Part shown: positions 1 to 60,236 of the stretch, piece after piece
How the letters are laid out: each line of letters begins with the position of its first letter
Numbering within the stretch: the first letter of the stretch is position 1
NCBI GenBank assembly: GCA_964247055.1
Contig: OZ176052.1
Location: 8,990,001-9,054,000 of the forward strand
Origin: Paragordius varius
Lineage: Eukaryota; Animalia; Nematomorpha
Direction of reading: 5' to 3'
DNA length: 64,000 nt
Program-made: the position numbers and the translations under genes
The notes under the pieces: model-generated
What the model saw: the letters and a program-made list of their open reading frames with translations, nothing else
Told to the model about the DNA's origin: nothing
Database searches by the model: none

Positions 1-307
1 ATTTTTTTCAGCTAGAAGATCATAGATATTATTAAAAACTTTGCCCAAAATCTGCGAGTATAATTTTTTTTCACGATTTTGGTAAAAAATTAAATAGGCT
101 TTAACGCCATAAGTAAAATAATGAAATTGATTAGAAAAATATATATAGATTAAAATATACTATATTTATCAAGTAAGGAGATATACAAAAATTTAGACCA
201 CACATGTGCGCCAATTAAAAAAAATTTTGAGCCAATGTTATGGCTTTTTACTATCTAATTCAATTAATACTGCATGAACCTTCAAATTTCCATTATTATA
301 TAAACAG

Positions 308-14015: not shown

Positions 14016-17000
14016 TTATGATATTGCTACAAGACCCTTGATCTTCAATTTTTGCGCCAATTGTTGCTAAAAAAAATAATATTATGAATATATATTCAGC
14101 AATGGCAAAGAAATTTTTTTAATTGTGGGAAATTTGTTCTTTGAAAACTAACGAATGTTTTTAGTGCTATGTGCTTTTGGGTTTCACAGTACAATAAATT
14201 TAGAATACAAAAATACCAATCTGACTTTTGGAATTTCATAAACCTTATCCAAAAAATTGAAAATAAATAAAAATTTTATTATAAACCTTTTTCTGTAAAA
14301 AACTTTTTAAAATTTCAAATTTATTTGCATAATCATAAAAAGGTTATATATCAATTCAAATCGATAGTGTTATTAAACTTCTTTAGCAAATATACTTAAT
14401 AATCCAAGCACTCTGAAAATCTGTTACCTTGGCATTAAAAATTATAAAAAGTTGTCTTTATGAAAACATCAAACTTAAAAGAAACTTACCATTGCTTCGT
14501 AAAGATTTGGATGATATCGGATTCCCTTTTCTGAGTCGCATTTCGCCATATTTTTACGTTCTGGATCTCCTGCAACCAAAACCTCTTTTTCACCCTCAAT
14601 CTATCAAAAAAATTATTCAACTTATGTTTCAGCTTTATAAAAAATTGGAGAAATACCGCAACATATTTTACGAAATTCGGATGTTTAAATTTTTTAAATG
14701 CATACAGGTTCTAGATTTCGAACGATTCCCATCAAATCGGTCATCCGGTCTTCAAACCCAGGTGCAAACATTGCTGGATTTATGGCCACAAAACATTGCC
14801 CCTAAAAATATATTTAAATTAAATAAAAGCAGAAAAATTTAAATATATACTCTAAATGGGATCTTTTCAGATTTTGTTTATAGTCAATGCCTATGGAGAA
14901 ATATAGAATTTTTTATAATAAAAATGAGAAATTGATAATATATTTTTTATAAAACACAAACTTTTAATAATTTATTCATAGAAAGTTTTTTATTTAATTT
15001 ATACAAATCGGATCCTTGTATTATCTATTAAAACCGGTGAATGGCCAAATTGTAAAATAAAGTGAGCTGTTTGCGTGTGATTAAAATTTTTAAAGTATAA
15101 TTTGCCCTGTTCAATAACAACCAATTCAAATGCATGAAAAACAGTTTATCCTTTTTGACAATAAATGCAAATTATCATTAAAGTGTTAAATTTATACAAT
15201 ATGTTTTAAAACTAAAAAATGATATAAACATTTTGATATTTTTAAAGATCAAAGACAACGACAAATTAAACTCACTAGATCAGCCACTTTTTCCGTGTTC
15301 ATCCAACGCCGAATATTAGGTCCGTATGTACTACCCGCTAAGATGCCACAAAATATCTCAACCATCATAGCTAAACCGGAACCCTTATATCCACCAGTTT
15401 TTTCCATGCCTCCCAAAGGAAGTAAACCTCCGCCTAAAAGAACTTCTTTGGGTTTTTGTGTTTCAAGTCCGTCTTTATCTACACCCCAACATCTTGGTAT
15501 GGGTATACCTTGACGATCATGGTATTCCACCTAACAAAAACGTCTTTACTATTTTTATAGTATCAAGTGACAGAAATTTTTTGAGGTAAATTATCTATAT
15601 AACATCACAAATTCTAAGGAAATTATAGGACAAAAATTTAATTTGTTTAACATAACCGCAATTTATTTAAAAGGTGAATAAGGTGTGAAATTTAATAACT
15701 TTTCCAATGGCTGCGGTTGATGTAGCCATATCCAAACAAAAGTAATCTTCACCTTTTGCAGGGGCTGTAACGGCAATCGGATTTGTGCCTAAAATATTTT
15801 TTTTGCCCCGAGTTGGAACTTGTAAGGGTGATGTATTTGTAAATGCCATTCCCTGAAAATCAAAAAATACATATAATTGGAGCAAAATTGTGACAGCATT
15901 AAGCGCACGTTCACAATCTAAAATCGGTTAAATATATTAATTGTGCATAAAACTAAATATAATAAACATAACACATGTTTAATTGGATATTTAAAACATC
16001 AAACCAGGGCTGTCCAGAACATAGGATTTCTTGAGCCGTGTTTTTATAAATATTTTTTTAACTACAAAAAAAGTGAATTTGTTTTAAATATTTTATCAAC
16101 CACAAATAAAAATCACTCTCTGTTGATATTAATAAGTATTTGATAAAATTTAAACTAGCGGTAGAATAGGCTTTTTCAAATTTTTGTATGCCAAATTTTG
16201 AAACCTATGAAGATTTTAGTGGCCATGCCTATAATTCACCATTAAGCTTATAAATGTTAATTTTTGTAGATCTGTCGTAATCACGGCATATCCATATTAA
16301 AAGATAATATATTTTTAAAAAATTAAGGATTTTAAAATATTTGCTTCGTTTGATACAAAACCGATTTAAATTTTTAAAAATATTAATAGAAATCACCATG
16401 TATTAACCAATCTTAGGATACATTATATATATTACAACTGTTAGTACAAGACATAATCAATCCGTCATTTACCATTAAATCAGATAAGTTCTCTATTTAA
16501 ATGTTAATCTATATATTTATAAAAATGGAAAATGCTGGCTTTGTGATCTGGTACAGGAAAACCGGTAGACCCAATCAAATCCAAATATCGAAAAAATATA
16601 ATCATTAATAAATGTCCCGACAATAGCTTCGCCCTTTTTTTGAAATAGGCCCCCAGTTCGGGCCCACCCCGTATGAAAAACGGGTTTTTTTTGAAAACAG
16701 AAGTCCACAAAATCGTGTTTTTGAGACAATTTTCCGGAGAACGTGTTGGACCATTCAATTTCAAATATGATTTTTGTTTACTTATTTTCGATTGCGCCGA
16801 ACATAGTCGAGTCACTTTTTTGATTTAGGCCCTCTTTTTACCCGCTCCCCCCGTAAAATGCCATTTTTTTCAAAAAACAAAGTCCACAAAAATAATTTTC
16901 TAAATCGATTTTTCGCCCTAGGTATGAGACCGTAAAAATTCAATAAAGATTCCACGTATTCCCTGTTAAAAGGCAAAAATTTTAGTCCACCGTTTATTTG

Positions 17001-20000
17001 ATGATAGCTGCTGGGTAAGGAGCTACCCGCTAAAAACTGATTTTTCATATAACTTTGTGAACTGTTTCTGGAAAACCGGTGATCCCAATCAAATCCAAAT
17101 ATCGAAAAAATATAATCATTAATGAATGCCCCGACAATAGCTTCGCCCTTTTTTTGAAATAGGCCCCCAGTTCGGGCCCACCCCGTGTGAAAAATGGGTT
17201 AAGTCAATTTTTTGGAGAACGTGTTGGACCATTCAATTTCAAATATGATTTTTGTTTACTTATTTTTGATTGCGCCGAACATGGTCGAGTCACTTTTTTG
17301 ATTTAGGCCCTCTTTTTACCCGCTACCCCCGTAAAATGCCATTTTTTTCAAAAAAAAACAAAGTCCACAAAAATATTTTTTTGATTGTATTTTTTTGTCC
17401 ACGGTATGAGACTGTAAAAATTCGAGAAAGATTTTTCGTATTGCCTGTTAAAAGGCAAAAATTTTAGTCAAGCGTTTCTTTGATGATAGATGCTGAGTAA
17501 GGAGTATCTATCATATGCATAGCATGTTAAAAGATATATGGATATTAATACATTATTTATCCTCATCTATATATTTATAAAAATGGAAAATGCTGGCTTT
17601 GTGATCTGGTACAGGAAAACCGGTAGACCCAATCAAATCCAAATATCGAAAAAATATAATCATTAATAAATGTCCCGACAATAGCTTCGCCCTTTTTTTG
17701 AAATAGGCCCCCAGTTCGGGCCCACCCCGTATGAAAAACGGGTTTTTTTTGAAAACAGAAGTCCACAAAATCGTGTTTTTGAGACAATTTTCCGGAGAAC
17801 GTGTTGGACCATTCAATTTCAAATATGATTTTTGTTTACTTATTTTCGATTGCGCCGAACATAGTCGAGTCACTTTTTTGATTTAGGCCCTCTTTTTACC
17901 CGCTCCCCCCGTAAAATGCCATTTTTTTCAAAAAACAAAGTCCACAAAAATAATTTTCTAAATCGATTTTTCGCCCTAGGTATGAGACCGTAAAAATTCA
18001 ATAAAGATTCCACGTATTCCCTGTTAAAAGGCAAAAATTTTAGTCCACCGTTTATTTGATGATAGCTGCTGGGTAAGGAGCTACCCGCTAAAAACTGATT
18101 TTTCATATAACTTTGTGAACTGTTTCTGGAAAACCGGTGATCCCAATCAAATCCAAATATCGAAAAAATATAATCATTAATGAATGCCCCGACAATAGCT
18201 TCGCCCTTTTTTTGAAATAGGCCCCCAGTTCGGGCCCACCCCGTGTGAAAAATGGGTTAAGTCAATTTTTTGGAGAACGTGTTGGACCATTCAATTTCAA
18301 ATATGATTTTTGTTTACTTATTTTTGATTGCGCCGAACATGGTCGAGTCACTTTTTTGATTTAGGCCCTCTTTTTACCCGCTACCCCCGTAAAATGCCAT
18401 TTTTTTCAAAAAAAAACAAAGTCCACAAAAATATTTTTTTGATTGTATTTTTTTGTCCACGGTATGAGACTGTAAAAATTCGAGAAAGATTTTTCGTATT
18501 GCCTGTTAAAAGGCAAAAATTTTAGTCAAGCGTTTCTTTGATGATAGATGCTGAGTAAGGAGTATCTATCATATGCATAGCATGTTAAAAGATATATGGA
18601 TATTAATACATTATTTATCCTCATCTATATATTTATAAAAATGGAAAATGCTGGCTTTGTGATCTGGTACAGGAAAACCGGTAGACCCAATCAAATCCAA
18701 ATATCGAAAAAATATAATCATTAATAAATGTCCCGACAATAGCTTCGCCCTTTTTTTGAAATAGGCCCCCAGTTCGGGCCCACCCCGTATGAAAAACGGG
18801 TTTTTTTTGAAAACACAAGTCCACAAAATCGTGTTTTTGAGACAATTTTCCGGAGAACGTGTTGGACCATTCAATTTCAAATATGATTTTTGTTTACTTA
18901 TTTTCGATTGCGCCGAACATAGTCGAGTCACTTTTTTGATTTAGGCCCTCTTTTTACCCGCTCCCCCCGTAAAATGCCATTTTTTTCAAAAAACAAAGTC
19001 CACAAAAATAATTTTCTAAATCGATTTTTCGCCCTAGGTATGAGACCGTAAAAATTCAATAAAGATTCCACGTATTCCCTGTTAAAAGGCAAAAATTTTA
19101 GTCCACCGTTTATTTGATGATAGCTGCTGGGTAAGGAGCTACCCGCTAAAAACTGATTTTTCATATAACTTTGTGAACTGTTTCTGGAAAACCGGTGATC
19201 CCAATCAAATCCAAATATCGAAAAAATATAATCATTAATGAATGCCCCGACAATAGCTTCGCCCTTTTTTTGAAATAGGCCCCCAGTTCGGGCCCACCCC
19301 GTGTGAAAAATGGGTTAAGTCAATTTTTTGGAGAACGTGTTGGACCATTCAATTTCAAATATGATTTTTGTTTACTTATTTTTGATTGCGCCGAACATGG
19401 TCGAGTCACTTTTTTGATTTAGGCCCTCTTTTTACCCGCTACCCCCGTAAAATGCCATTTTTTTCAAAAAAAAACAAAGTCCACAAAAATATTTTTTTGA
19501 TTGTATTTTTTTGTCCACGGTATGAGACTGTAAAAATTCGAGAAAGATTTTTCGTATTGCCTGTTAAAAGGCAAAAATTTTAGTCAAGCGTTTCTTTGAT
19601 GATAGATGCTGAGTAAGGAGTATCTATCATATGCATAGCATGTTAAAAGATATATGGATATTAATACATTATTTATCCTCATCTATATATTTATAAAAAT
19701 GGAAAATGCTGGCTTTGTGATCTGGTACAGGAAAACCGGTAGACCCAATCAAATCCAAATATCGAAAAAATATAATCATTAATAAATGTCCCGACAATAG
19801 CTTCGCCCTTTTTTTGAAATAGGCCCCCAGTTCGGGCCCACCCCGTATGAAAAACGGGTTTTTTTTGAAAACAGAAGTCCACAAAATCGTGTTTTTGAGA
19901 CAATTTTCCGGAGAACGTGTTGGACCATTCAATTTCAAATATGATTTTTGTTTACTTATTTTCGATTGCGCCGAACATAGTCGAGTCACTTTTTTGATTT

Positions 20001-23000
20001 AGGCCCTCTTTTTACCCGCTCCCCCCGTAAAATGCCATTTTTTTCAAAAAACAAAGTCCACAAAAATAATTTTCTAAATCGATTTTTCGCCCTAGGTATG
20101 AGACCGTAAAAATTCAATAAAGATTCCACGTATTCCCTGTTAAAAGGCAAAAATTTTAGTCCACCGTTTATTTGATGATAGCTGCTGGGTAAGGAGCTAC
20201 CCGCTAAAAACTGATTTTTCATATAACTTTGTGAACTGTTTCCGGAAAACCGGTGATACCAATCAAATCCAAATATCGAAAAAATATAATCATTAATGAA
20301 TGCCCCGACAATAGCTTCGCCCTTTTTTTGAAATAGGCCCCCAGTTCGGGCCCACCCCGTGTGAAAAATGGGTTAAGTCAATTTTTTGGAGAACGTGTTG
20401 GACCATTCAATTTCAAATATGATTTTTGTTTACTTATTTTTGATTGCGCCGAACATGGTCGAGTCACTTTTTTGATTTAGGCCCTCTTTTTACCCGCTAC
20501 CCCCGTAAAATGCCATTTTTTTCAAAAAAAAACAAAGTCCACAAAAATATTTTTTTGATTGTATTTTTTTGTCCACGGTATGAGACTGTAAAAATTCGAG
20601 AAAGATTTTTCGTATTGCCTGTTAAAAGGCAAAAATTTTAGTCAAGCGTTTCTTTGATGATAGATGCTGAGTAAGGAGCATCTATCATATGCATAGCATG
20701 TTAAAAGATATATGGATATTAATACATTATTTATCCTCATCTATATATTTATAAAAATTGAAAATGCTGGCTTTGTGATCTGGTACAGGAAAACCGGTAG
20801 ACCCAATCAAATCCAAATATCGAAAAAATATAATCATTAATAAATGTCCCGACAATAGCTTCGCCCTTTTTTTGAAATAGGCCCCCAGTTCGGGCCCACC
20901 CCGTATGAAAAACGGGTTTTTTTTGAAAACAGAAGTCCACAAAATCGTGTTTTTGAGACAATTTTCCGGAGAACGTGTTGGACCATTCAATTTCAAATAT
21001 GATTTTTGTTTACTTATTTTCGATTGCGCCGAACATAGTCGAGTCACTTTTTTGATTTAGGCCCTCTTTTTACCCGCTCCCCCCGTAAAATGCCATTTTT
21101 TTCAAAAAACAAAGTCCACAAAAATAATTTTCTAAATCGATTTTTCGCCCTAGGTATGAGACCGTAAAAATTCAATAAAGATTCCACGTATTCCCTGTTA
21201 AAAGGCAAAAATTTTAGTCAAACGTTTCTTTGATGATAGCTCCTGAGTAAGGAGTATCTATCATATGTATAGCATGTTAAAAGATATATGGATATCAAAA
21301 CATTATTTATGGTAATCTATATATTTATAAAAATGGAAAATGCTGGCTTTGTGATCTACAGGAAAAACGGTAGACCCATTCAAATCCAAACTTCGAACCC
21401 CCCCCCCCCCCCCCCCCAGAAGTCCGAAGGACTTCCTCGGGCTGCGTAGCAGCACGAGATTCACGCTAGTTAGATATATAATTTTACATTATAAATGAAA
21501 TAACATATTACATATTGCATTTTTTTAAGAGATTATAGAATTTTTGCGGGCCTCAGAAAAAGATGCTCTCGGCAGCGTACTAAAAACTCTTGACCTAGAC
21601 TTAAATATAAATAAAGTGAAGATTTTTTACACTACAAACCCTCGTCGTTACCCAGACAGTTAAATATTTTCTCGGAAAATATGTGAGATTTTCAATATGT
21701 TCACATCACAAATTAACATATTAAATTATAATGCGATACCAATAATCCCTGATTGGTAGCCATTATCGAATAATATCCGGCTATCCCAAAATGATTTGAA
21801 TCTAAAAATCAATTAATTTATCTATATACCATAAAATTTAATACAGTTGAAAATAGTTTAGTTTTCAATATAATTGTCCATATGTATAAAATTATTTCAA
21901 TTGAATGAAAAGGTACTTTTGCAAGCCACCCATCCTACACCAGTTTCTTTGGCCTTTTTTATGGCTAAATTCATTGCAAACATTCCGACAACTGGGCCCA
22001 ACAGATTATTTCCATCGACCCATGCAGTCGATACCGTTTCTTTCAAGATAGTTGGAGTCCCGTCGCCTTTGCAAATTCGAGTTTCAACATCTTTGACATA
22101 CATGGCTATACATTTTTATAACTTAAGTTTACAATTTCCAAATAGGTGACAAAAAATTATAACAAATTTACACGAATCATATTCGTATATTATTAATTTC
22201 AACAGGAAAATTAGTTTTAAGTTGATGGGAAGAAAAATTCACGAATATTAACAAAAGTTAAGCTCAATAAACATAATATGTATCCAGCACATGCTAATAG
22301 AAATCGTGGGAGGTTTTAAAACAAAAACTTTAAAAATCATAATATCTAAGGAAACGGCTAAATTAGAAACAAAGAAAATCCAAATTAAATTATTAATTAA
22401 TTTACTATCGGGCATGGGTATAAAAATGTCTAACATATGCCTAAATAAATTTTAACTTTTAGTGTTGGAAAATATAATTTGGGGCAATTATTTCTGGTAT
22501 TGATTCAAAATCAGTGTTATTTAAATTTTGAACAAACCTGTCTATTAATAAGGCTTTTTGATCAATATATTAAAATATAATTTTGATGATAGTTTTTTTC
22601 TAGCATATCCATTGCAAATGAGTGGTTATTTTACTTCCCTAAAACAATTAGTGTTCATTTAAAACCAATTTTGAGAACATGTAAACACTGTCAATGATCT
22701 GGTATATATCTGCATATAGTTTTTAAATAATCTCCATAAAATGTTTTATATTTGAATTAAAGAAAAAATGGGGATTTTAAATCAGAAATCAATTTTTAAT
22801 TATGATAAATGATTTAAATTTTAATAAAGGTTTGTTATTGTAATTATTTGCATTAGTAACAATTTTGGATGGTATTCTAAAGTTTAAACTAAATAATCAC
22901 ATAAGTGAATTTTGAGGACAGCAATAGAGGCCTTAACATCCAAAAATTAAATGATTATGATTAATTAAAGCAATAAGAAGTAGTGCCAAACTCAAGCGTC

Positions 23001-23600
23001 AAAAAATCATTTTTTATATACATTGGCGACAACATTATATTATATTTTAATCACACGATAAAAAATGATACTTTAACTTAGTAAATAACTGTTTTCAAAG
23101 CATTCATCTATTTTAAAATAGGGAGTAATTAATATTTTACGTAATCGATTTAGACCATGGCTATAATGACCCCTGTAATCTGCGGTGACAAGCAATTCGG
23201 CCAAGGACTTTGCATGATCTTCTTGAGTGCCCACGGCCTTCATGGCGTCTGTCGCAAAACGCTTTGCATCAGCCATAGGTATGAGGACTTTAGCCACGTT
23301 TTCAGACATTGTAGCTGAATTATGATAATTGCAACTGGGAATTAAATTTGGGATAAAAGTTTGCGTAAGTTTGGTTTTATTTCTCGTGTCGTATTCAGAA
23401 TTATTTTGAGGCGTAATATAACTTTCAGGATCTTGTGTGGTTGCACTGAAAGTAGAATAATAAGATTCTGGTGAATATAGGGGTCCTGGGCACCTTTGAA
23501 TACTCTTATCAGCAAATACGGTTAAAGGGAATTGCGTACGGCACGGATTAAAAGCTGTCGTGTTAATCCTACGACCCATAACGGTATATTTAACATGCAT
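14016..23600 (-). CDS. Ldh_2-family (malate/L-lactate/ureidoglycolate dehydrogenase-like) oxidoreductase, 8 exons
   Basis: Exons (23600 or 23309)-23141, 22105-21917, 21802-21740, 15852-15700, 15530-15276, 14801-14706, 14600-14490, 14066-14016. Motifs [85 protein letters not shown]. Start codon is uncertain. Confidence 0.9.
16508..21469 (+). mobile_element. Helitron-derived tandem array in intron 3 of the Ldh_2 gene: about 4.5 units of 1058 bp, each a dimer of ~0.5-kb subunits, plus one 3' terminus
   Basis: Units start at 16508, 17566, 18624, 19682 and 20740, and the ORF track repeats at exactly 1058 bp. Each unit begins TCTATATATTTATAAAAATGG. The array ends with C20, two hairpins and CTAG|T at 21469. 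Confidence 0.9.
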
Positions 23601-25979
23601 TTGTGAGAGTGGAATAATTAATATAAAATTACCCAAACTTTATATAATTGAACAAATTATAAGATCAACAAAAACATCATAATTAAGTTATAGCTATGTA
23701 TTATAATAAACTTATATTTTAATTATCTATGTGTATTGATTGATGTTTACCCAATCAATAACATTGTTTTTTTGGTAAATAATATATGAATATATGCACA
23801 TTGTGCAACACTGGAAACCTTGAAATACATTATAATAAAAATTACGTTATGCGTTAAGTATGTAAAAACTAATAATGTAAACAAATTGTAACATATATCA
23901 TAAATATACCTTGCTAAATGTGATGAAATTCCAAAAAAATTTCGTGAAATCTTGCTGGTAGTCGTTTAAGAGATTGGGTTCGAAGTGAGATATTAGTGAA
24001 AGTTGACGAAAAAAAATACTAAAAGAAAGATAAAAAAAGTTAAAACATTAAATTTTTATTTATATAGACTAGACTACATAAAGTGCGCTTTATTGTTATC
24101 TTAAAATCATTGTTGAAAAATGCATTTTATTTTGTGATATTATACGTATACAGTACTGATTTGGCACCACCATAAGGTGGACACAAAAAAACAATAACAA
24201 ATATTTTGCATTTATACGGACATATCCAAAAAAATTTTGGACTCAAATTCGATATTTGTTGCTTCTTATAAGTTATTTTTGCCTCATTTTATATTATTCT
24301 TATGCGAAAAGTTTTTGTTATTGTTAACAAAATTTATATTTTTTTCATTAGTATCAAAATAAAGGGATGGATGGGTAGGTAAATAAACACGTGTTAAAAA
24401 TATTTAAACAAAAATGTGTCATGTAAATGTTGTTGCCCTTAAAAATATATATCAAATGTAATAAAAATTATTATAAATATTTATTACCTTGGAGATAAAA
24501 AGGAGAATATTTTGTAGATCTTTAAAAATAGTTAATATTGTAAAAGAGTAAAATTAAATAAAAAATAATAAAAGAGGGACTTCCTCACTCAGTTTCAGAA
24601 TGATTATTTTATAAATATTTATTCATGTATGGCTGTTATTTACAATTAGATTTTTTACATACACATTAGTAAACACCATTCGGGGAAAACTAGAGTAAAT
24701 TGGATAGAAAAAAAACAGAATCAATTATATTTTTATTTTTTTAGTTATGTATGCATTATTATATATTTTATAATAAATGTAAAATATTTTTTTTATAAAG
24801 ATTTACATTAGTCAAAAAATAAAACAATAAAACGGGGACCGTTTCTTTGGCAACTTTTTAGCGGTACTTTGTTTAAAACCACGGCCATAAAATTACAAAA
24901 AATCGTAATAAATAATTAGCATGTAAAATAATTTTAATATATAATTAGGATAATAAAACTATTAAGATATTTTGTCCGTTTTATTTTTCAATATAGGATA
25001 TTTAATTTCATAATTTAGAATGATTTCAAATGATAATTGTTCACACTATTGATAAAATATTTGGTGTCTTCAAATTTAATTAAATAATATTGTGATCAAA
25101 ATAAATCACTTAAATTTAAAGGTGAAACAATATTTATTTGATAATTCAGAGTCGGAGAAATCTTATGAAAAACTGTAATTACACTGTGTCCGAAAGCTTC
25201 CATAAAGCAAACTATGTGTTTTTACTGCAATCATTTATTTTGATTTTATAATCCAACCTATATTAACAATTATCGGACAATATCAAGTTTTGCGTTTATT
25301 TTGGACAGCTAGCCATTTTAACGGATTTCATGCAAGACTTTCAAGAGTCATTGTTGTAAATTAATTTATTTTTTAAATATTTTTGGTCTAAAATTTACCA
25401 AATAAATATTTTGATGTAAAGCCATTAAGCCAATTCGCATCCTACGACCTTTTAGGTAAATTATAAAATAACATTATATAAAAAATATAAAATAATTCAA
25501 AAAAACCTCATTTCAATTTTTAACTCCTCAATAATTAATTTTTAATTTTCGCTAAATCGCTAATCGGCAAATAAATACAGTTAATAAATAGAATCAATAA
25601 CCCAAATAATCATTTCACTTGACAATATATTTTCGTTAGAATTTACTTTATAATCAGTTTGTTGAATATTTGATTTTAATGTTATTAGACCCTAGAATGT
25701 GTTTGTGCGGCCCTTGACAACTTTTTATGCTGTCGGCGAATTCTTAATAAAAAATATTTTAATAATTTATAAAAATTATTACATATTTTCTTTAATTTAA
25801 ATAATTTTTTTTACAATTTTATATAAACAATTATTTCTACAAATATATCAATAATATTTTTTTCATTTAAAATCGAATAATAACTTAAATTAACTATAAA
25901 TCAACATGAATTGCAGTTAAACACGAATTTTTTTTAAAAATCTATGGAGAATAAATAGCCTAAGCACTTCATCACCTTT

Positions 25980-27881: not shown

Positions 27882-28395
27882 ATGTCAACCCCCATTTATT
27901 TGCGTTATTATGTTGGGCATAAAGGAAAATTTGGTCATGAATTTCTTGAATTTGAATTTAGCCCAAACGGTATATTTAGCTGTTTATATGTCAGGAAAAC
28001 TGAGATATGCAAATAATTCGAACTATAAGAATGATACACTTATTAGAAAAGAGGCATAAAATAATGATATAATTTAGGCCTATGTAAGTCGAGCCGTTTT
28101 GGATGAATTAGCTAGAATAGTACAAACATCAGAAATTTTGAAAGAAAATGATGAAACATGGCCCCCTCCTGATAGAGTAGGTCGGCAGGAATTGGAAATC
28201 CTTATCGGGAAAGAATATATATCGTTTAATACCGCCAAAATCGGAACTCTGGCTGATACAGAAAATACAAAGTTTATTTGTTTTTAATATTACAGGGATC
28301 CTGAAGGCTTAAAAGCTTTGTACTATCTGGTGCAAGATTTAAAGTGCTTGGTGTTTTCTTTAATTGGTCTACATTTTAAGATTAAACCAATTTAA
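27882..28395 (+). CDS. mago: Mago nashi (exon junction complex core), 146 aa
   Basis: Exons 27882-27969, 27995-28053, 28078-28271, 28296-28395 total 441 nt. [21 protein letters not shown]...[14 protein letters not shown]...[24 protein letters not shown]. Confidence 0.97.
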
Positions 28396-34581: not shown

Positions 34582-37013
34582 TTATAATAAGTTTATGTTT
34601 TCATATAAATAATATAATCTTATATCCATATTTAAGTCTTTTTTGCTCAATATGGGAAGCGAGAATATTTCTTTAGCCAATTGGGATAAGAAAAAATATT
34701 TTTCATTACGATTGCACCACCACGAAATAACATTGTTTCCCACATAGATTTCTTTATTATAATTGTGCATCTCGTGACTTAACTGCATTGAAAGATTTTT
34801 GCAAAAATCTAAAATATATTCTTAATTTACTTTGTTCCTTATTTTTATGCATAATGTACTGGAAAATAATTTTTTGATTATCTTTGCTCATGGAAAACGA
34901 ATTTTTTATACTCGGATCCAAATATTGTGCAATAAGGATAATATCGTCAATATTTTTCCAAATGTTATTTATAGCATATAATACGTTTGGCAGGACATTG
35001 GTGATATTTTGTATTGTTGGATAAATATCGCTTATATATACAATTTTATCAATCATTTCTTCCATAACATCATGGATGTATGTTGATTCTTCATCATTCG
35101 CACCAGTGATCGGATCATTTATATTAAATTTATTTCCCAAAACGCACGTTGTATTTAATACACGCTTTATGTTTGTCCAATTAGGATTAATTATTTTGAG
35201 TTTTTGTTTTACACTTTTGCTTTGGGCTATTTCTTGCCATTCATTAAATGATTCTATATCAAATGATATGGTTTGTAAATTTAGTTCACCCAAATTCAGA
35301 TGTGTGTCGTAAGTCATTTCTTTTTTTACCAATTCATTGTTCTTATCGAATATACACACCTCCCAATAATTCATTAAATCAATTAGGCACGAATGATTTG
35401 AAACATTTATATTACGCGATTCCCAACCATTTTCTCCTTGTCCCTCGTATATGTAATAAAGATGGGCGGAATAATATTTTTGTGCCTCCTGAATGTTGTT
35501 AGATTCAAAATTGTTTTCATTTTCTTTTATCATAATAATAGGTTCACCCAATTTATTTATGATATAATCATGCTTCTGAATAAGTAAATGACAAGATAAC
35601 TTAGGTTCCAATAATTCCGTACATATTTTTATTTTAACGATTTCATCCAATCGGTTTTTTGTTTCATCTCTTAATTCGTTTAATAACGTAACATTACCAT
35701 GATTATTTATGCCACATGTATTAAGTATAACTAAACTCATATATTGTAAATAGTCATTGAGTGGTGAAATTTTGAATTTTCTAGCCCCTTTAATAAGCTC
35801 TTGGTAAATCTTTTGAGCTATTAATTTATTTTCTACATGCTCCTTTCCTGTGATATCACTTGTTAATGAATCATCCTTCTTTATGGTTTGAACCTCATTT
35901 GAACCAATAATCTGATCGTCATTTATTTCTTTAATTTCATTTTCTTCTAATTGAGCAGCAATTGTAGCATTTTGGTTATCGTTTTTAACATTATCATTGT
36001 TATCGGTACTAATTCCATCATTCCCCACCATTGGTTCATACATTTCTTCGTTTATCAATCCTTCCTTAACCTGTTGCAACCATTTTTTTATTATTTCCAA
36101 GCCAATCTCATTCGCTTGTTCTTGCGGGTTATGGTATTGATAAAAATTGTTTAATGAGTTATAATTATCTGACTTTTGTTTTTTGTCCGCAACTTTAGTC
36201 CTTTTAACATATTTTTTCTTAATTTTTCCACACGGGTACCGTTCAACAACCTCATTCGTATAATAATTCCTACTTTTAATTTTACCATTTTCAGGATTTT
36301 TACATGAAACCAGATTCTTATCGTTATCATCATTACCTCCAGTTATTATCTTGTCGTTTACCAATGTAGTACTAAGGGAATTCGTTAAACTATTTTGATT
36401 TGTAGCAACAGTTTTTCCCATAATTTCATATTCCATGGGATGTTTATTTCGCAAATGCGTTAACATGGGTGATGTGCTAAATCGTTTTGAACCGTAAGAT
36501 GGGCCACGGGAGATAACTTTACCACACAATTTACATATGGATTGCGATTCATTTTCCGGGTTTACGTTAAAATAAAGCCAAGCACCACTTTTACGTTTGC
36601 GCGTGTTTAGTCCATCCTCTATCCCACCAACATCAATACAAGTTTTACGTTCATTATTTAATTCATTATTATTTGGTGGTTTTAACAATGGTTCCTTGTT
36701 CACTTCACCACATTGAATATCAATCATTTTATCACAGTTAAGCAAGTTTGACCCTACTTTTGGACTTTTGTTGGGGTTGACATCCATTGATGTTTTTTCT
36801 TGCATTTCCATGGATTGTGAAGATAATTGGCACTCTTCCGAATTACTATTGGTCAAATTTTCAATTCGGCTCCTAATTAAAAATTGATAATTATTGTTTA
36901 ATAATTTATATCAGTATTTTAAATCACCTTTCGTTCCAATCCTTGTCTGTCACATAATTTGTTTCATTTATAACATCCAAATCCGGTTTAATTTCAAAAT
37001 CTAGAGTATCCAT
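34582..37013 (-). CDS. hAT-transposase-derived ZBED-like protein (BED zinc finger plus hAT C-terminal dimerisation domain), ~784 aa
   Basis: Exons 37013-36928, 36872-34831, 34808-34582 total 2355 nt. BED finger AWLYF...CKLC...TSPMLTHLRNKH, YLDPSIK, and NVISWWCNRNEKYFFLSQLAKEIFSLP. No TIRs recognised. Confidence 0.8.
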
Positions 37014-49656: not shown

Positions 49657-51521
49657 ATGCATCTAGTGAAGGTATTTTTTAATATATAAAAAAGGTGCCT
49701 TTGGAGGATCCATCTTTATTATACCGACCTGAAACCAACTTTAGAAATTATGAGGTCAAAATATTTTATATTGTAGATTGATAAGGGGTGCCCTGAACAT
49801 GTCAAACGTACATATTATGATATGCATAAATCACAAACTCTAGATTTTGTCAGAAAAAAAGTAATAGTAAATCTAAAAATTAGCATCTAAAATGGCTACA
49901 GTTTAATCATATTAAATTAACAATAATGGAAGCTCTAGAATTAATGAATCTCATAATTGATGAAAGCGACCCTGATGTACATATTTTGATAAAACTTTTA
50001 TTTTAGACATCCCTCCCTAATATAGTACACTCATTTCAAACTGCTGAAAGGATTCGGGATCAATATCCCAAAGACGGTATTTCGTAGTATTTATTAAGAA
50101 GAGATACCTCATAAAGTCATAATTATTTTTGTTTATTATCTTAATATCTCATTTGGCCAAGAAATCATATTGTCAAGTTGTAAACAATTATCAATCATTT
50201 GTTTCTAAATTGATATTTTTTTTTAAAATAAACAATAAAAATGTTATTAAAATATTAATATAATAGACTGTGGACAGTTATATTACAACATCTGTTTGAT
50301 AGGATTAGAACGCTTATTGATTTCTTTAATTATAATTATTAGTTTATTAATATCTCCGAAATTATTGGATTGAAAAATATATTATTTAATTTCAAACAAA
50401 AATAAAACTTCTAATTAATGCATTAACGAGATGTCAATGTCCTTTATCAAATTTATTTACCAATTTGGTAAGGTCTCCAATCTCCTACATCAAAACCTCG
50501 TTTAACCAAAAATAAGGATTTTATATTTAATATATTTTACAAAGAGAATACGATATGGTTACTGCCCCTGGGATTTTAATATTTTTTATTCACCTCAGTT
50601 TTAGGACCATTCATTAAAATTAAATGTTTTATTTGAATTCTTTGAAGATTGGTTCCATTTAACTGGACTCATACACGATATGGGGAAAATTTTAGCTATC
50701 ATTGATCCCTCTGAACCACAATGGGCTATTGTTGGAGACACATATCCACTAGGGTGTGCTTTATCGCCTCACATTGTTTTTGGAAAACAAAGTTTTGCCG
50801 GAAACAAAGATTGGTTTGATAACGATTCCAAACCGAGTCAACTATACTAGTATCTACATTTACTATAAAATTTGAATTTTTTGCTAAATAAACACATTTA
50901 TATTCTTTCATCTGTCCAAAATAAGTTTAGAATAAGTGTTTTACCATTTTGTATGAATGAATCAAATCATATTGGATTTTTTAGCTTTTTTACGTTTATT
51001 TTATTTTTATAGTTCTCCGAATGGGATATACGAAGCTAATTGTGGGCTTAATAAATTAATTATGTCCTGGGGACATGATGGTATTAATTGATGAATTTAT
51101 CATTATTTTATAATTGATTTCAGGATATTATATTTTTTTGCTTTTTATTGAATATATTTATATCTAGAATATCTCTATCAAGTATTAAAACATAATACTA
51201 ATAATCTACCAGATATTGCTTGCAACATTATAAGGTAATTATATAGATAATATATGTAAACTTGAATCTTATTATAATGTTATTTCAAATGTTACATTTA
51301 ATAGATTTCATTCGTTCTATCCATGGCATAAAAGTGGGGCTTATACCCATTTATGCACCGATGAAGATTTGACAAAAACACTCAAATATGTGCAGATTTT
51401 TAATGGTTTTGATCTCTATTCCAAATCCGACTCCATTCCCGACATTGGTGCAATCAAACCCTATTATAATGATTTAATTACGAAATATTTTGGCTCTACT
51501 GAACGGAAACTTCAATTTTAA
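49657..51521 (+). CDS. MIOX: Myo-inositol oxygenase, 291 aa, 9 exons
   Basis: Exons 49657-49671, 49695-49754, 49777-49860, 49884-49976, 50007-50076, 50648-50849, 51013-51080, 51168-51234, 51305-51521 total 876 nt. [80 protein letters not shown]. Confidence 0.95.
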
Positions 51522-52649: not shown

Positions 52650-53834
52650 TTAAACATAACAAACGTCCAACCCTTTAAAGAGAACAGAGTTGATTCCAGA
52701 ATTGAAAACACCAACGTGATTAAATGAATGTTGTTCGAATGTGTATGGTAGTATTTGTTGTGTAACAATATAATGTTTTCTTTTCTGTTGGGGTTTATTT
52801 TCATTCGCTGTCGTAGATGGTATACGTTTCCCTAATTTTGAATAACAATGTAATATGATGGTAAGATTTTCGGTTTGACCCCTATCTAAAATGACAAAAT
52901 ATACATCTGTTATATTTTCTGGGATAGTAAGCGTATCACACACCATTGCTTCTTTCCCTTCATTGTTTTTATTGTATTCGGGTTTTGTTAAACCTTCATA
53001 CAAATCTGCCGAATGAATTAGGCATGCATAGGAAATTATTATGCGCGTTTCGTATTGATCTGTCTCACTGCTTCCTGGAATATTTGTTGGGGCATGACAT
53101 AAAAGACGTGTTTCAATGGTTATCTGCAAACCTTGATATTCATTAAGACCAGTACTAGTTGTAGATGTGGATGCCGTATCACCTAAAGATGATAATGCTA
53201 AAACGTTGGGAGGTATTAACGATTTCTTACGCACTGTACTTGTTCGAGGAGGAGTAGTCGGAATTCCTGACATTAAATGTACGGAGGTAAGATCGGGTTT
53301 AGCTCTAACTAAAAAACTTATTGAACTTTCGCATTCACTAGTGAGTGGATTCATGTCATCAACCGAAAAATGAAATGACCCATAAAATTTGACGAAATTG
53401 TTGGTTGTGGGATAATTTTTGGAGCTTAGCACAAGAGCCATGGGTTGAATAGTTAGGACATTAGGGGCTGTAGGAAAAATGGAGCAATTAACATCCAGCT
53501 CAACTAATTCAGGTTTGAAAGACCATTTTGTTGTATCGTAAACGTCATCATAAACGCAATAAATTAGAGTATTGATGAAACCATGAATATCCCAAGTAAA
53601 GGGGTTAACTATATTAGACTGAGGAGGTGGATAACTAGTGCGTAATGATTTGGGTTGGCTTAAATAATTGATTGGTACAGAATTTTTGAGTGATGTAGGC
53701 GCTTTATATGTATAGAATGAATTTTGTTGTAAAATGGGTTTGTTGAATGGTGCCACTTTCTCATACTTTAAGAATGGATTACAAAAAGGTCTTAAATTTC
53801 GCAATTTCCCTAAACTAACCATATTTTCATCCAT
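52650..53834 (-). CDS. Unidentified protein; 394-codon ORF, possibly a large first exon of a longer gene
   Basis: 1185-nt ATG-initiated ORF, far longer than expected by chance at this AT content. A possible donor GAC|GTTTGT lies near the end. No family recognised. Confidence 0.7.
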   Translation of the reverse strand: MDENMVSLGKLRNLRPFCNPFLKYEKVAPFNKPILQQNSFYTYKAPTSLKNSVPINYLSQPKSLRTSYPPPQSNIVNPFTWDIHGFINTLIYCVYDDVYDTTKWSFKPELVELDVNCSIFPTAPNVLTIQPMALVLSSKNYPTTNNFVKFYGSFHFSVDDMNPLTSECESSISFLVRAKPDLTSVHLMSGIPTTPPRTSTVRKKSLIPPNVLALSSLGDTASTSTTSTGLNEYQGLQITIETRLLCHAPTNIPGSSETDQYETRIIISYACLIHSADLYEGLTKPEYNKNNEGKEAMVCDTLTIPENITDVYFVILDRGQTENLTIILHCYSKLGKRIPSTTANENKPQQKRKHYIVTQQILPYTFEQHSFNHVGVFNSGINSVLFKGLDVCYV

Positions 53835-55766: not shown

Positions 55767-57482
55767 GTCTAGTATTATTGAAATTCAGTATATGGAATAA
55801 AACAATGTTAGTCCAAAAAAGAATAAAAAATGTTATTTTCAAAAAACAATGGGATATTATGGATATGTCTATATATAACTGGAATCGTTTTTATAACATT
55901 ATTTTATACCATACACTACTGTAAACGCAAAAATCCCGATTGTGGAATTATAAATTTTAATATAAGATTATATCTAGTTAAAAAAATTTAATTAGCAATA
56001 CTATTAAATGTCATATGGTTTGCATACCATAACTATATCTAAGATCATAATTATATTATAAATATTTTTTTCATACGATATCTCTGAGTATTTATCCTAT
56101 AATTTTAATCGTCAAATTTTTTGGTAAAAATGGAAACGAAATATACGAGGAGTAATATAAATAAAAATTTTCTGAATTCTGATGCGCTGATATCGTCAGA
56201 AACATCGAGTTAGTAATTTGCTGTTTATTTATATGATATACCTTATTTATTATAATAATAAATAATTGTCATTTAATATAATAAATATATTTAAAATTTA
56301 TGCCCCGCAACCCCGCTTTTGCGTACTTTAAGTACATTTATTTATTTTATATTTATGCTTTAAATATAAGAAGGTTTTTTTTCTTAATTACATGCTTGAT
56401 TATCAAAATCCTTTTAGTAATAATATCATTACATCACTTATTTATCAATCCAAGTGTTTATGCAAGATAACCCTTGCCAGCTTCCTTAAGGTAGTATTTT
56501 GCCATTTCTTGTTTTTTTAGCCCTTTTTCTATGAGTATATGACTGGCTATTATTTAGGCAATCTATTGATAACTCATTTCGATGGACCAAAGCAACATAG
56601 TTTTTTGACATTCTTTCAGATATCGGTTTGACATCTTGCCTGCTAAATTATATTCTTATCTTAACCCTTACCCACATCAAGGCATCTTCCTTTCCCTATT
56701 TAAATAGATTTGTTTGGATTGATGCCCGACTTTATTAGATTACACTTTATTCGGGTTACATTAACGAATAATATATCACAATCACACAAAACTCTTGAGA
56801 TTTTGTCCATATTTAACGTATTGCTAATTATTTGTAAATTTTCCTAAGTCAAAGAACAAGCTACACTAGTGGTAGTCAAACTGCGGAAAAGGGCTTTATG
56901 GCCCTAAATTTTAATGTTATTATTTGGAGAATTGTTTGTGTATTGGGAAACAAACGGCACTTGATGCAATAAAAATATTTTATTCCCCCAAATATTTCGG
57001 TGGGTAACACTGATTTAAACCAATAGTACTCAAACTGCACCTCACGATCCGCATGGGGCACAAAAAATGCTTTTATAACCCTTTATTTATTTATTACAAG
57101 TTTTAATGCACTTATTTGTATTAAAATACCCGCATATGTATTAAACAGCGGTAGAATATTTTGGAATCATATGCCTTAACACAATAAAACCTTCGAAAAG
57201 TTTTTGGTAACTACCACTGAATCAAACCTAATAACTCTAAATACCTGCTTTTTTTCTTTACAACAGCCGCATAATCTTTCATTAACAGTAGTTTTCTCTG
57301 TCAGTGGATCAGACATAGTTATAAGGCTATCAAAAATTTTAATCGCCCACACGCTGATATTTTATTAATTGGACGAAGTTGACGCCTAATTTTTAAGAGG
57401 TTTATATAGCGGCACATTTTACAAAGGAAAATAATAATTAAATGTAATATATCAATACACAACACCTTTTTTAGTTAGTGAC

Positions 57483-58297
57483 ATGTTTGCTCGCAAGCTT
57501 AACGCTCTAGGTTTCCCAAGCTGGGAAGAATTTAACTCGGATGGTAATTTCATAACATTATATAGATATTAACCAATTTAAAAATCTAATAATATGGCTA
57601 GAAAATGAAAAAATAAGGTCTTATATTCCAGAAAATAACATATTTACAAATATTAATGATCTTAGTTGGGATGAAATATATTTTAAAGTTTAGTTTTTAT
57701 AATAGTAGTATCTAAAGGACCTTTCATGTCCATATTTATTAAATTCCTCTAAAGAGGAATTGTTGGATTGGTTATTAGGTTATGCTATACAATTAGAATA
57801 TGGAAATGATAGTTAGATTATTTTAGTTATTTTAGGCAGCTACAAAAACGTTAAATTAAATGAAACTGACACATCTAACATTAATTGTAAACTTATATTG
57901 ATTTTTTAGTCAATACATCTGAATTTAAAGCAGCAACATATAATTATGCCAAATTACTCAAGATTCCTGAACATCCGAATCATTTGATTACATTAGAAGT
58001 TTACCTAATTCATTATATTAGGCTTTTTGCAAATATATGTTGCATAATATGAATCCAGAAATAATGGATGCAAATAGACAGGTGTTACCTAAAAATAGGA
58101 AGTACATTGATTTGAAATTTATCAATGTTGGTGACATAAATCCAAAAATTATAGATGCAGCAAAATTATACAAATTGTTATGCTTAAAAGATCTAAGAGA
58201 TTTTCAAAATCAAATTAATCACGCTATAGTAGAATTACAGAATATAACCGCTAACCCAAAAACGGACCAAAGTTTAGGCAAAGTTGGTCGAGGATAA
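57483..58297 (+). CDS. RTRAF: RNA transcription, translation and transport factor (RTRAF/C14orf166/CGI-99), 233 aa
   Basis: Exons 57483-57543, 57566-57687, 57709-57811, 57836-57886, 57910-57998, 58022-58297 total 702 nt. MFARKLNAL, IIWLENEKIR, LLDWLLGYAIQLEY, LRDFQNQINHAIVELQNITANPKTDQSLGKVGR. Confidence 0.95.
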
Positions 58298-60236
58298 TTC
58301 CAAATCAAATTTTATATTTTTGCCATTATATGAAGAACAAGAATTTATTTTAGTATATACTAATATTGATATATAATATTCTGATTTAGTTCATTAAATC
58401 TATCAATTTTAAATCTGGATCAAATAAGACAAAGTGTAAGTAAAGGTTGTGTTATTTGATATAAGTGAATGATTCAATTTCATTATGACTGTCCTTATAA
58501 AGTGTTTTAAAAATTGTTCATTGATATATCAGGATCATATAGATAAAGTTTTTTTCATCCCTTTTCAACCAAAATAAGTTTTAACGGGTCAGATTTGATT
58601 TTATAACCACGCTTTCGAATTCTTTTTAACATTTTAAAGTTATAAATTAATATATAGCATATGTTTGTTTAATTTATTCAGAGTATAGTAGTATGCGGCT
58701 TAGTGTAAGTTTGTCATTTATTAATTTTTTATTAAAATGTAAAATGGTAATAAAACCATTTGACATTTTTTGTTTCGCAAAACAATGGATGTGGAAACGT
58801 AAAAGTTTCAATTTTAATCACTTTAATTATACACATGAAATGTGAAGCAATAGTAAATTTTTCAAACGGATTATTAAAAATTGATCCTTTTTTCGCTAAA
58901 TTATAAACCATAAGTATATCTTTTGGGTGTTCTTTCGCGTGTCCCTGTTTAATATTAAATTTCTAAGCAATATAATGAGATAAAAAATTAGCGCAAAAAT
59001 GGGTTTTAAACAGAATTGCACCTCTCTCAGGTTATTATTGATTATTAATAACTTTTGTCTCCAAGTAATCACTCGCTTTTATATGTATTTTCTTGTATAT
59101 TTTGGGTAATATGCTATCCCATATTATTCTTAGGCGGTCAATTCTATTGTTTAGAATTTTATTATCAATCTTTGTATTTAACCGTTTAAATGTATTTTGA
59201 GGCGCAGCATGTTTGTTTATCACTGAGGGTGACAGTTGTTTTAAATGTATTAATCATTAGGGTAAATTAAAACTAATAAGGTTACAAAAGAACGGATGTA
59301 ATCAAACATTCCTGTCTCGGATGCTCAAAAATGCTCAGTTCTATCTAGTATACCAAATATCTTTATCAGTTAGACAACTTTGCTAAGGAGATAAAAATAG
59401 CTTAGATACATGAGCCCTATCCAAATTAAATACCCCATTAATTTTTGTTTATTTGTGTTTCCGAAAGTATAAAGACCTGTTTAAATGAGGTAGCGTCTTT
59501 TAAAAAGTCAAACCGTTTCACCATTATCGTTAAGATCCGTGGGTACCAAATAGTTCAATGGGCTGAATAAAATATTTTTTGGCGTGTAATTACCGATAAA
59601 TATTACATAGATGTGACAATGCGGATACTTATCATAATTAAATCAGCAAGATTATATGCGGATCGCACATAAATTGCGATAGATACCTCTTGTACTTGGT
59701 GGTATTAAAAATAAAGATTTTTCTTACTTCATTTAACAAATAAGTGGTTTATTATTGACCAACAACTTTGGTCTTTCTAATTATCAGCCAATCTTACAAC
59801 ATATAAATTTATATATTTTATTTGTGATTAATCGCCTCTATGTGAGCTGAAGTTTTATTTGCCACATCTTGCCATATTCGTTGTATCCTTATAATTTGCG
59901 ATTCTCTTAGCACTTCAAATTCTCTTGTTTTTATCCCCAGAGCGATCTGAAATTTATTTAAAAATATGCTTTCTTTAGCCTTTTAGGAGCACATTTAATT
60001 TTTTAAAAAATACTTAAAATTGTAAAAAAATCTCATCTTAATCTTTTTCTCTGCCATTTTTTTTCTTTAAATAATTTTTTAAATCGCTAATAAATAGGCA
60101 AATTAATATATACTAGGCTACAAAATGTATAATTTAATAAGAGCTTGAATTTTACCAAAAAACTTGATATTTATTTTTAAAATGAGCTGTTTATGTCAGT
60201 TATTTTATGGAGTCGTCCAAATTTTAGACTCTAGAA

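Follow-up and report, generated by a model that had tools for sequence, protein, structure and literature searches.

Does an animal gene at positions 57483-58297 of the window, by which we mean the whole 64-kb stretch of DNA analyzed here, carry five introns that are each barely longer than 20 nucleotides, and if so, where did such introns come from? To our knowledge, introns shorter than 30 nt were long believed to be missing from animals. Micro-introns are a feature of Paramecium (~25 nt), Stentor (15-16 nt), and the nucleomorph of Bigelowiella (18-21 nt). The first-pass annotation of this DNA had placed an RTRAF gene at the locus and had divided it by five GT..AG introns of 21-24 nt. The analysis presented below, which compares the genomic sequence with RTRAF genes and proteins of other animals, indicates that these segments are very probably true U2-type GT-AG spliceosomal introns, namely five ancestral introns that have shrunk to 21-24 nt.

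Direct reading of the plus strand recovered all five GT..AG segments with the sequences, coordinates, and lengths that had been claimed for them (22, 21, 24, 23, and 23 nt, Table 1). As the first-pass annotation also had it, excising all five yields an uninterrupted frame of 702 nt that encodes 233 amino acids followed by TAA. The intron phases are 1, 0, 1, 1, and 0 in order, no stop or frameshift lies inside any of the exons, and the genetic code is the standard one. The claim that keeping any one segment disrupts the frame was likewise borne out, with a premature stop arising at codon 30, 63, 97, 120, or 160 when a single segment is left in place. Since the 21- and 24-nt introns, whose lengths are multiples of three, contain in-frame stops, all of the retention products would be non-productive. 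Intron 2 ends in two tandem acceptors (TAGTAG), and it had been proposed that only the distal AG avoids an in-frame stop; this is correct, for the intron is in phase 0 and use of the proximal AG leaves an in-frame TAG in the message.

Table 1. Predicted features of the RTRAF locus, with the introns found at the same positions in Gordionus and tick RTRAF, and other features of the window.
Feature	Coordinates	Strand	Description	Gordionus intron	Tick intron
RTRAF exon 1	57483..57543	+	61 nt; ATG; ends in phase 1; MFARKLNALGFP aligns with orthologue MF.RKL.AL		
RTRAF intron 1 (position 1)	57544..57565	+	22 nt; GT..AG; phase 1; after CDS nt 61, the same CDS nucleotide as Gordionus intron 1	42 nt	
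RTRAF exon 2	57566..57687	+	122 nt; Pfam RLL profile 22-59, E 1.8e-5		
RTRAF intron 2 (position 2)	57688..57708	+	21 nt; GT..TAGTAG; phase 0; precedes the conserved YLK motif	36 or 48 nt	564 nt
RTRAF exon 3	57709..57811	+	103 nt; Pfam RLL profile 62-93, E 1.2e-7; continuous with exon 2		
RTRAF intron 3 (position 3)	57812..57835	+	24 nt; GT..AG; phase 1; after ..DN in Gordionus; alternative in-frame acceptor 57826 (15 nt)	40 nt	763 nt
RTRAF exon 4	57836..57886	+	51 nt; variable linker, ~20 residues shorter than in orthologues		
RTRAF intron 4 (position 4)	57887..57909	+	23 nt; GT..AG; phase 1; inside conserved F codon (NIN/FNT; F codon of LD/FD in Gordionus)	5,420 nt	2,513 nt
RTRAF exon 5	57910..57998	+	89 nt; Pfam RLL profile 134-161		
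RTRAF intron 5 (position 5)	57999..58021	+	23 nt; GT..AG; phase 0; between LITLE and A	61 nt	
RTRAF exon 6	58022..58297	+	276 nt including TAA; Pfam RLL profile 188-253, E 6.6e-20; C-terminus PKTDQSLGKVGRG		
RTRAF position 6	absent		phase 1; before NPK in Gordionus	8,895 nt (L001 9186-18080)	
mago nashi	27882-28392	+	introns of 25, 24 (GC..AG, 28054-28077), and 24 nt, giving the canonical 146-aa protein		
MIOX	49695-51518	+	22-30-nt introns in the 5' half, then longer ones		
TRIC channel gene	7642-6081	-	23-nt intron 7439-7417 bridges Pfam profile 54 to 56		
hAT-like ORF	34757-36856	-	699 aa; BED zinc finger; 22-nt intron proposed at 34809-34830		
187-aa ORF	23073-23636	-	N-terminal part of Ldh_2 malate/L-lactate dehydrogenase domain		

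The identity of the encoded protein can be read from its parts as well as from the whole. When exons 2, 3, 5, and 6 were translated separately, each matched the Pfam RLL family (PF10036), the matches were colinear, and exons 2, 3, and 6 each exceeded on their own the curated cut-off of 24.6 bits. The spliced product scored 225.2 bits (E 8e-69) against an HMM made from 58 RTRAF orthologues. When 13 full-length orthologues were aligned with it, the match extended from MFARKLNALGFP to PKTDQSLGKVGRG without a gap or an insertion at any of the junctions, and both the N-terminal MFxRKLxAL motif and the C-terminal PKTDxxLGKVGR motif were present in this alignment. Taken together, these matches point to an intact and probably functional copy of RTRAF, a conserved housekeeping gene.

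An open frame spanning five excised segments could in principle arise by chance, either in a decaying pseudogene or in AT-rich DNA in which GT..AG segments that hop over stop codons are always to be found. Dynamic programming was used to search for the longest frame that can be stitched together across GT..AG segments. The five-intron RTRAF model was the top stitched chain of the plus strand, with a score of 716. However, 12 dinucleotide shuffles of the window reached scores of 317-470 when segments of 21-24 nt were allowed and 359-647 when segments of 20-30 nt were allowed, and decoy segments with AT..AG boundaries scored 743 at the RTRAF locus, compared with 716 for GT..AG. Thus, because shuffled sequence yields frames that are nearly as long and a decoy boundary performs equally well, the open frame by itself is weak evidence for introns in sequence with a GC content of 28%.

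An annotation-free census of the window also provided no usable excess of ORF-bridging GT..AG segments of 20-26 nt (63 observed, 55 expected), a result that would suit the chance explanation. The first version of this census was confounded by long ORFs, and the only peak in the refined version, at 23 nt, was produced by copies of a 1,058-bp tandem array. The census is uninformative, so window-level support for a class of micro-introns comes from the homology-supported cases. For RTRAF, what lifts the gene model above chance is the combination of the RLL matches, the orthologue-profile score, and the conserved intron positions described below. A chance origin is difficult to reconcile with a protein of 225 bits whose exons are clean and join seamlessly and whose two termini are the native ones, nor does it accommodate the finding that all five intron positions and phases are held in common with the nematomorph Gordionus; we consider it highly improbable and effectively refuted.

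The tandem array itself lies at ~16.5-21.5 kb, where a 386-nt open frame recurs at least four times at intervals of exactly 1,058 nt (16813-20372, minus-strand ORFs).

If the five segments are introns, RTRAF genes of related animals might be interrupted at the same places. A HMMER search with exon 6 against 1.84 billion representative proteins returned RTRAFs, and the nearest full-length one was that of the nematomorph Gordionus sp. m RMFG-2023 (XP_065320122.1; locus L001). The Gordionus protein and a tick RTRAF were threaded exactly onto their own loci to place their introns. All five window introns share both alignment column and phase with Gordionus introns 1-5 (Table 1), and the start and the end phase of exon 1 are identical in the two genes (CDS nt 61). 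The tick gene matches exactly at positions 2-4, phases included, and has a 2,256-nt intron only a few residues away from position 5, in a part of the tick gene model that seems to be extended. Since these positions and phases are the same as those of the longer Gordionus introns, the five segments are, as judged from this comparison, the positional counterparts of ancestral introns that have undergone extreme shrinkage.

A sixth intron, in phase 1 before an N/D-P pair, is present in Gordionus, in the tick, and in two ENA contigs (L003 and L004) that carry the last RTRAF exons of unrelated animals with ordinary introns. This distribution marks the sixth intron as ancestral, and it is absent from the window gene. 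Its predicted loss from this gene is an instance of intron loss alongside intron shrinkage. The Gordionus gene is thus orthologous, sister in the tree described below, and identically placed and phased at introns 1-5, but it differs in the length of every one of these introns and in retaining the sixth (Table 1), such that the entire gene occupies 815 nt in the window compared with 15.2 kb in Gordionus. No synteny between the window and the Gordionus locus was detected beyond RTRAF itself.

When 59 RTRAFs were placed in a maximum-likelihood tree under a site-heterogeneous model, the window sequence was sister to that of Gordionus with support of 99/92, in a single-gene analysis in which both sequences are AT-rich and long-branched and the composition of the window sequence is deviant. 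The two proteins are 42% identical, and they have in common the local motifs CPYL, LLC, and PNHLITLEA, which the other orthologues do not share. The resemblance is especially close in exon 5, where EHPNHLITLE nearly equals the QHPNHLITLE of Gordionus. The GC content of the window (28%) is similar to that of the Gordionus genome (26.9%; 10.1101/2023.06.26.546503). In the protein collections searched, there was no transcript-derived RTRAF of the source species and nothing nearer than Gordionus (about 42-48% identity). The host is most likely a horsehair worm (Nematomorpha) that is only distantly related to Gordionus; a dicyemid and a standard-code ciliate, both candidates at first, were set aside in view of the tree. 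A rival reading is that the DNA comes from some other AT-rich animal without near relatives among database sequences, in which case the pairing with Gordionus would be an effect of composition or of long branches. In its favor are the low identity, the deviant composition and long branches, the lack of synteny, and the occurrence of parts of the region in runs that bear six different organism labels. Against it stand the tree support, the shared motifs, the similar GC content, and a nuclear-receptor ligand-binding domain encoded in the window. We consider this rival unlikely.

We also considered whether the introns are real but at least one boundary differs from that proposed, for example through use of the acceptor at 57826, which would shorten intron 3 to 15 nt, or through production of both forms. 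When the five-intron model was compared with 107 frame-keeping alternatives at single junctions, it scored highest against the orthologue HMM, and all alternatives that removed more than 40 nt were at least 11 bits lower. Closer competitors were found among the short alternatives. The 15-nt version of intron 3 keeps the frame open while adding three residues and scored 223.6 bits, 1.6 below the best model, and for introns 1, 3, and 4 several other choices no longer than 30 nt came within 3-7 bits. The 3' end of intron 3 is the one real ambiguity. The mago nashi gene of the window likewise offers several micro-intron choices that hold its frame open, among which homology alone selects the canonical protein of 146 amino acids. 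Nevertheless, the proposed boundaries match Gordionus in position and phase at every one of the five sites, and a 15-nt intron falls outside the 21-30 nt spanned by the other supported introns. A different boundary at one or more of the introns is for these reasons distinctly unlikely.

The proposed introns of RTRAF have company in the window. Mago nashi, MIOX, TRIC, and the hAT-derived ORF together supplied eight more tabulated introns, each of 22-30 nt. For six of the eight, contiguous Pfam profile positions or homology of alignment quality spans the intron, bringing the window total to 13 tabulated micro-introns, of which 11 are homology-supported. MIOX is informative in that its profile match continues from position 22 to 26 across the 23-nt intron and from 54 to 55 across the 30-nt intron, while an intron of ~565 nt (about 50077-50643) bridges positions 76 to 77; MIOX further contains an intron of ~190 nt and one or two others measuring roughly 80-150 nt. 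Predicted micro-introns and ordinary introns therefore coexist, both in the window and within MIOX. These genes lend fair support to the earlier inference that the spliceosome of this animal handles a class of ~23-nt introns, since introns of 22-30 nt recur in other genes of the window, but the class is not the sole one, as the ~565-nt intron of MIOX illustrates.

An artefact of assembly or sequencing could also have generated segments of 21-24 nt. Unspliced RTRAF was found in Logan contigs of five runs, which represent three samples and two studies, and two of these contigs (974 nt and 918 nt) each cover the entire gene. Across the five runs, the introns contained no indels and every GT and AG was intact. 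The first-pass annotation had judged an artefact unlikely, and the presence of the intact segments in five DNA runs from three samples, on two haplotypes, and within the 974-nt contig that covers all of the gene agrees with that judgment and makes such an artefact exceedingly improbable. In all five runs that carry the gene (X1-X5), the introns are retained and the sequence continues through gene and flanks without joints, and we read these runs as DNA. Word shares of 0.63-0.65 had raised a fully spliced transcript as a candidate for X4 and X5; this was rejected, as alignment of the contigs shows SNPs to be the cause.

Sequence variation among these runs touched the introns at two sites, 57551 in intron 1 and 58013 in intron 5, and left the splice sites unchanged. 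The exons contained 17 SNPs, 6 synonymous and 11 non-synonymous, with the non-synonymous changes clustering in the variable linker encoded by exon 4. As evidence of purifying selection, the population SNPs are weak. One sample contains two haplotypes that differ at ~1-2% of sites, as seen from contig bubbles of runs X1 and X2 over the region 57300-58500. A further allele of the RTRAF region occurs in sample S3 and in run X3, which is filed under another organism label. Three runs that are labelled as RNA and filed under the same species (X11-X13) contained no match to RTRAF even at 82% likeness, and a 30-nt pattern across the exon 5/exon 6 junction had no match in metagenome contigs.

The 13 micro-introns of the window have sparse splice signals. 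At the 5' end, GT (GC once) is followed mostly by A or T, with A at +3 in 8 of 13 introns and G at +5 in a single one, and the upstream exon bases are unconserved. The 5' signal is accordingly close to GTa, without the extended agGTaagt motif used for comparison in PMC13644364. The 3' end is T-rich at -3 to -6 and reads TAG in 10 of 13 introns. Adenine is found at -7 in 10 of 13 introns and at -9 in 8 of 13. At ~82% A+T, neither these adenines nor the T-rich stretch is separable from base composition. In RTRAF, the introns have a GC content of ~18%, compared with 29% for the exons.

Based on these features, we propose that an ordinary U2-type spliceosome removes the RTRAF micro-introns by intron definition. 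Recognition would depend on the short 5' signal, GT followed by mostly A/T, together with the T-rich ..TTTAG 3' end, in introns that are about 81% A+T, and adenines ~7-9 nt before the AG would be the likely branch points. RTRAF mRNA that escaped splicing would be non-productive, given that every retained intron brings a premature stop.

The same properties would also suit micro-introns that are poorly spliced, as reported for microsporidia, such that much of the mRNA is non-productive and the introns, instead of being neutral, slow expression down or regulate it. All five RTRAF introns give premature stops on retention, the splice signals are short and AT-rich, and a median splicing efficiency of ~25% is cited in PMC13644364 for very short microsporidian introns. 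The gene is, however, an intact and conserved one that contains micro-introns exclusively, which implies that productive splicing is frequent enough for protein to be made. Predominantly inefficient splicing is in our estimation unlikely, and we favor efficient enough removal of shrunken ancestral introns by the spliceosome.

Introns of this size have precedents, and the comparison with each is instructive. The first-pass annotation had named ciliates, nucleomorphs, and dicyemids as the known sources of ~20-nt introns, a list that stands as far as it goes but omits the myxobolid myxozoans. Among 51 animal genomes, introns shorter than 30 bp were found only in Myxobolidae and in Dicyema japonicum (PMC13644364, Mol Biol Evol, September 2026), and the same study predicts that further lineages will be identified, with Nematomorpha unmentioned. 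Introns of myxobolids (Henneguya, Thelohanellus, and Myxobolus) have medians of 22-27 bp (PMC13644364). The window introns fall in the same length range, come from a similarly AT-rich genome, and are validated by the same logic of conserved positions between conserved exons. In contrast, myxobolids are cnidarians with compact genomes of 20-200 Mb, and their introns are backed by RNA long reads, while those of the window are known from DNA and homology.

The ultra-short introns of Dicyema japonicum (Lu et al. 2019 and Zverkov et al. 2019, as cited in PMC13644364) resemble those of the window in being animal GT-AG introns of less than 30 nt at conserved positions, with a 5' signal of approximately GTa and weakly conserved A residues shortly 5' of the AG. 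In dicyemids, which are parasites of microscopic size, introns are normally short, whereas the host of the window is probably a macroscopic ecdysozoan and its micro-introns stand beside introns of hundreds of bases. The two also differ at the 3' end: the signal is a bare AG in Dicyema and in non-myxobolid myxozoans (PMC13644364), while the window introns keep a T-rich ..TTTAG, which may only mirror base composition.

With the introns of ciliates and nucleomorphs, those of the window have in common that they are predicted spliceosomal introns near the physical minimum, that they are AT-rich, and that their retention generally results in premature stops. Ciliates and nucleomorph-bearing organisms are unicellular and often have altered genetic codes, in contrast with the window gene, which uses the standard code and has a TAA at the native RTRAF C-terminus. 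The ultra-short spliceosomal intron is a known kind of intron; the apparent novelty lies in the lineage and in the clean one-to-one mapping of such introns onto the longer introns of a relative.

In the literature searched, no report on nematomorph intron length was found, and introns are unmentioned in the Gordionus genome paper and in a comparative preprint on nematomorphs and mermithids. Based on the comparisons above, we think it likely that Nematomorpha are the third animal lineage to have acquired, independently, spliceosomal introns shorter than 30 nt. They would be the first of these lineages to consist of macroscopic ecdysozoans, with a genome that is rich in repeats, measures a few hundred Mb, and has micro-introns beside introns of hundreds of bases.

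If this is true, extreme shrinkage of introns would be separable from overall genome compaction, and many gene models could be broken by gene predictors and by tools of the BUSCO type in which the minimum intron size is set higher, with the result that some of the universal genes reported as missing from nematomorphs could be annotation artefacts. RTRAF is a very clean case of such shrinkage, in that the process can be read intron by intron, from 36-5,420 nt in Gordionus to 21-24 nt in the window. Confirmation by RNA data would add an ecdysozoan lineage to the animals with introns shorter than 30 nt, would mean that default minimum intron lengths fragment or miss genes in such genomes, and would provide a metazoan system in which to study how U1, U2, and U2AF act on a 21-nt intron.

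Some further features of the window were recorded. Scans of the 64-kb window with Rfam and for tRNAs gave no match. The second longest ORF in the window, an ATG-initiated frame of 394 amino acids at 52650-53834 on the minus strand, belonged to no Pfam family and had no homologue among 5.8 billion proteins. The window also encodes a nuclear-receptor ligand-binding domain, which had earlier been read as EcR. Finally, an acceptor-like motif, TTTTTTAG, is located at 57466-57473 on the plus strand and ends 9 nt 5' of the RTRAF ATG; it could serve as the acceptor of an intron in the 5'UTR or as a trans-splice acceptor.
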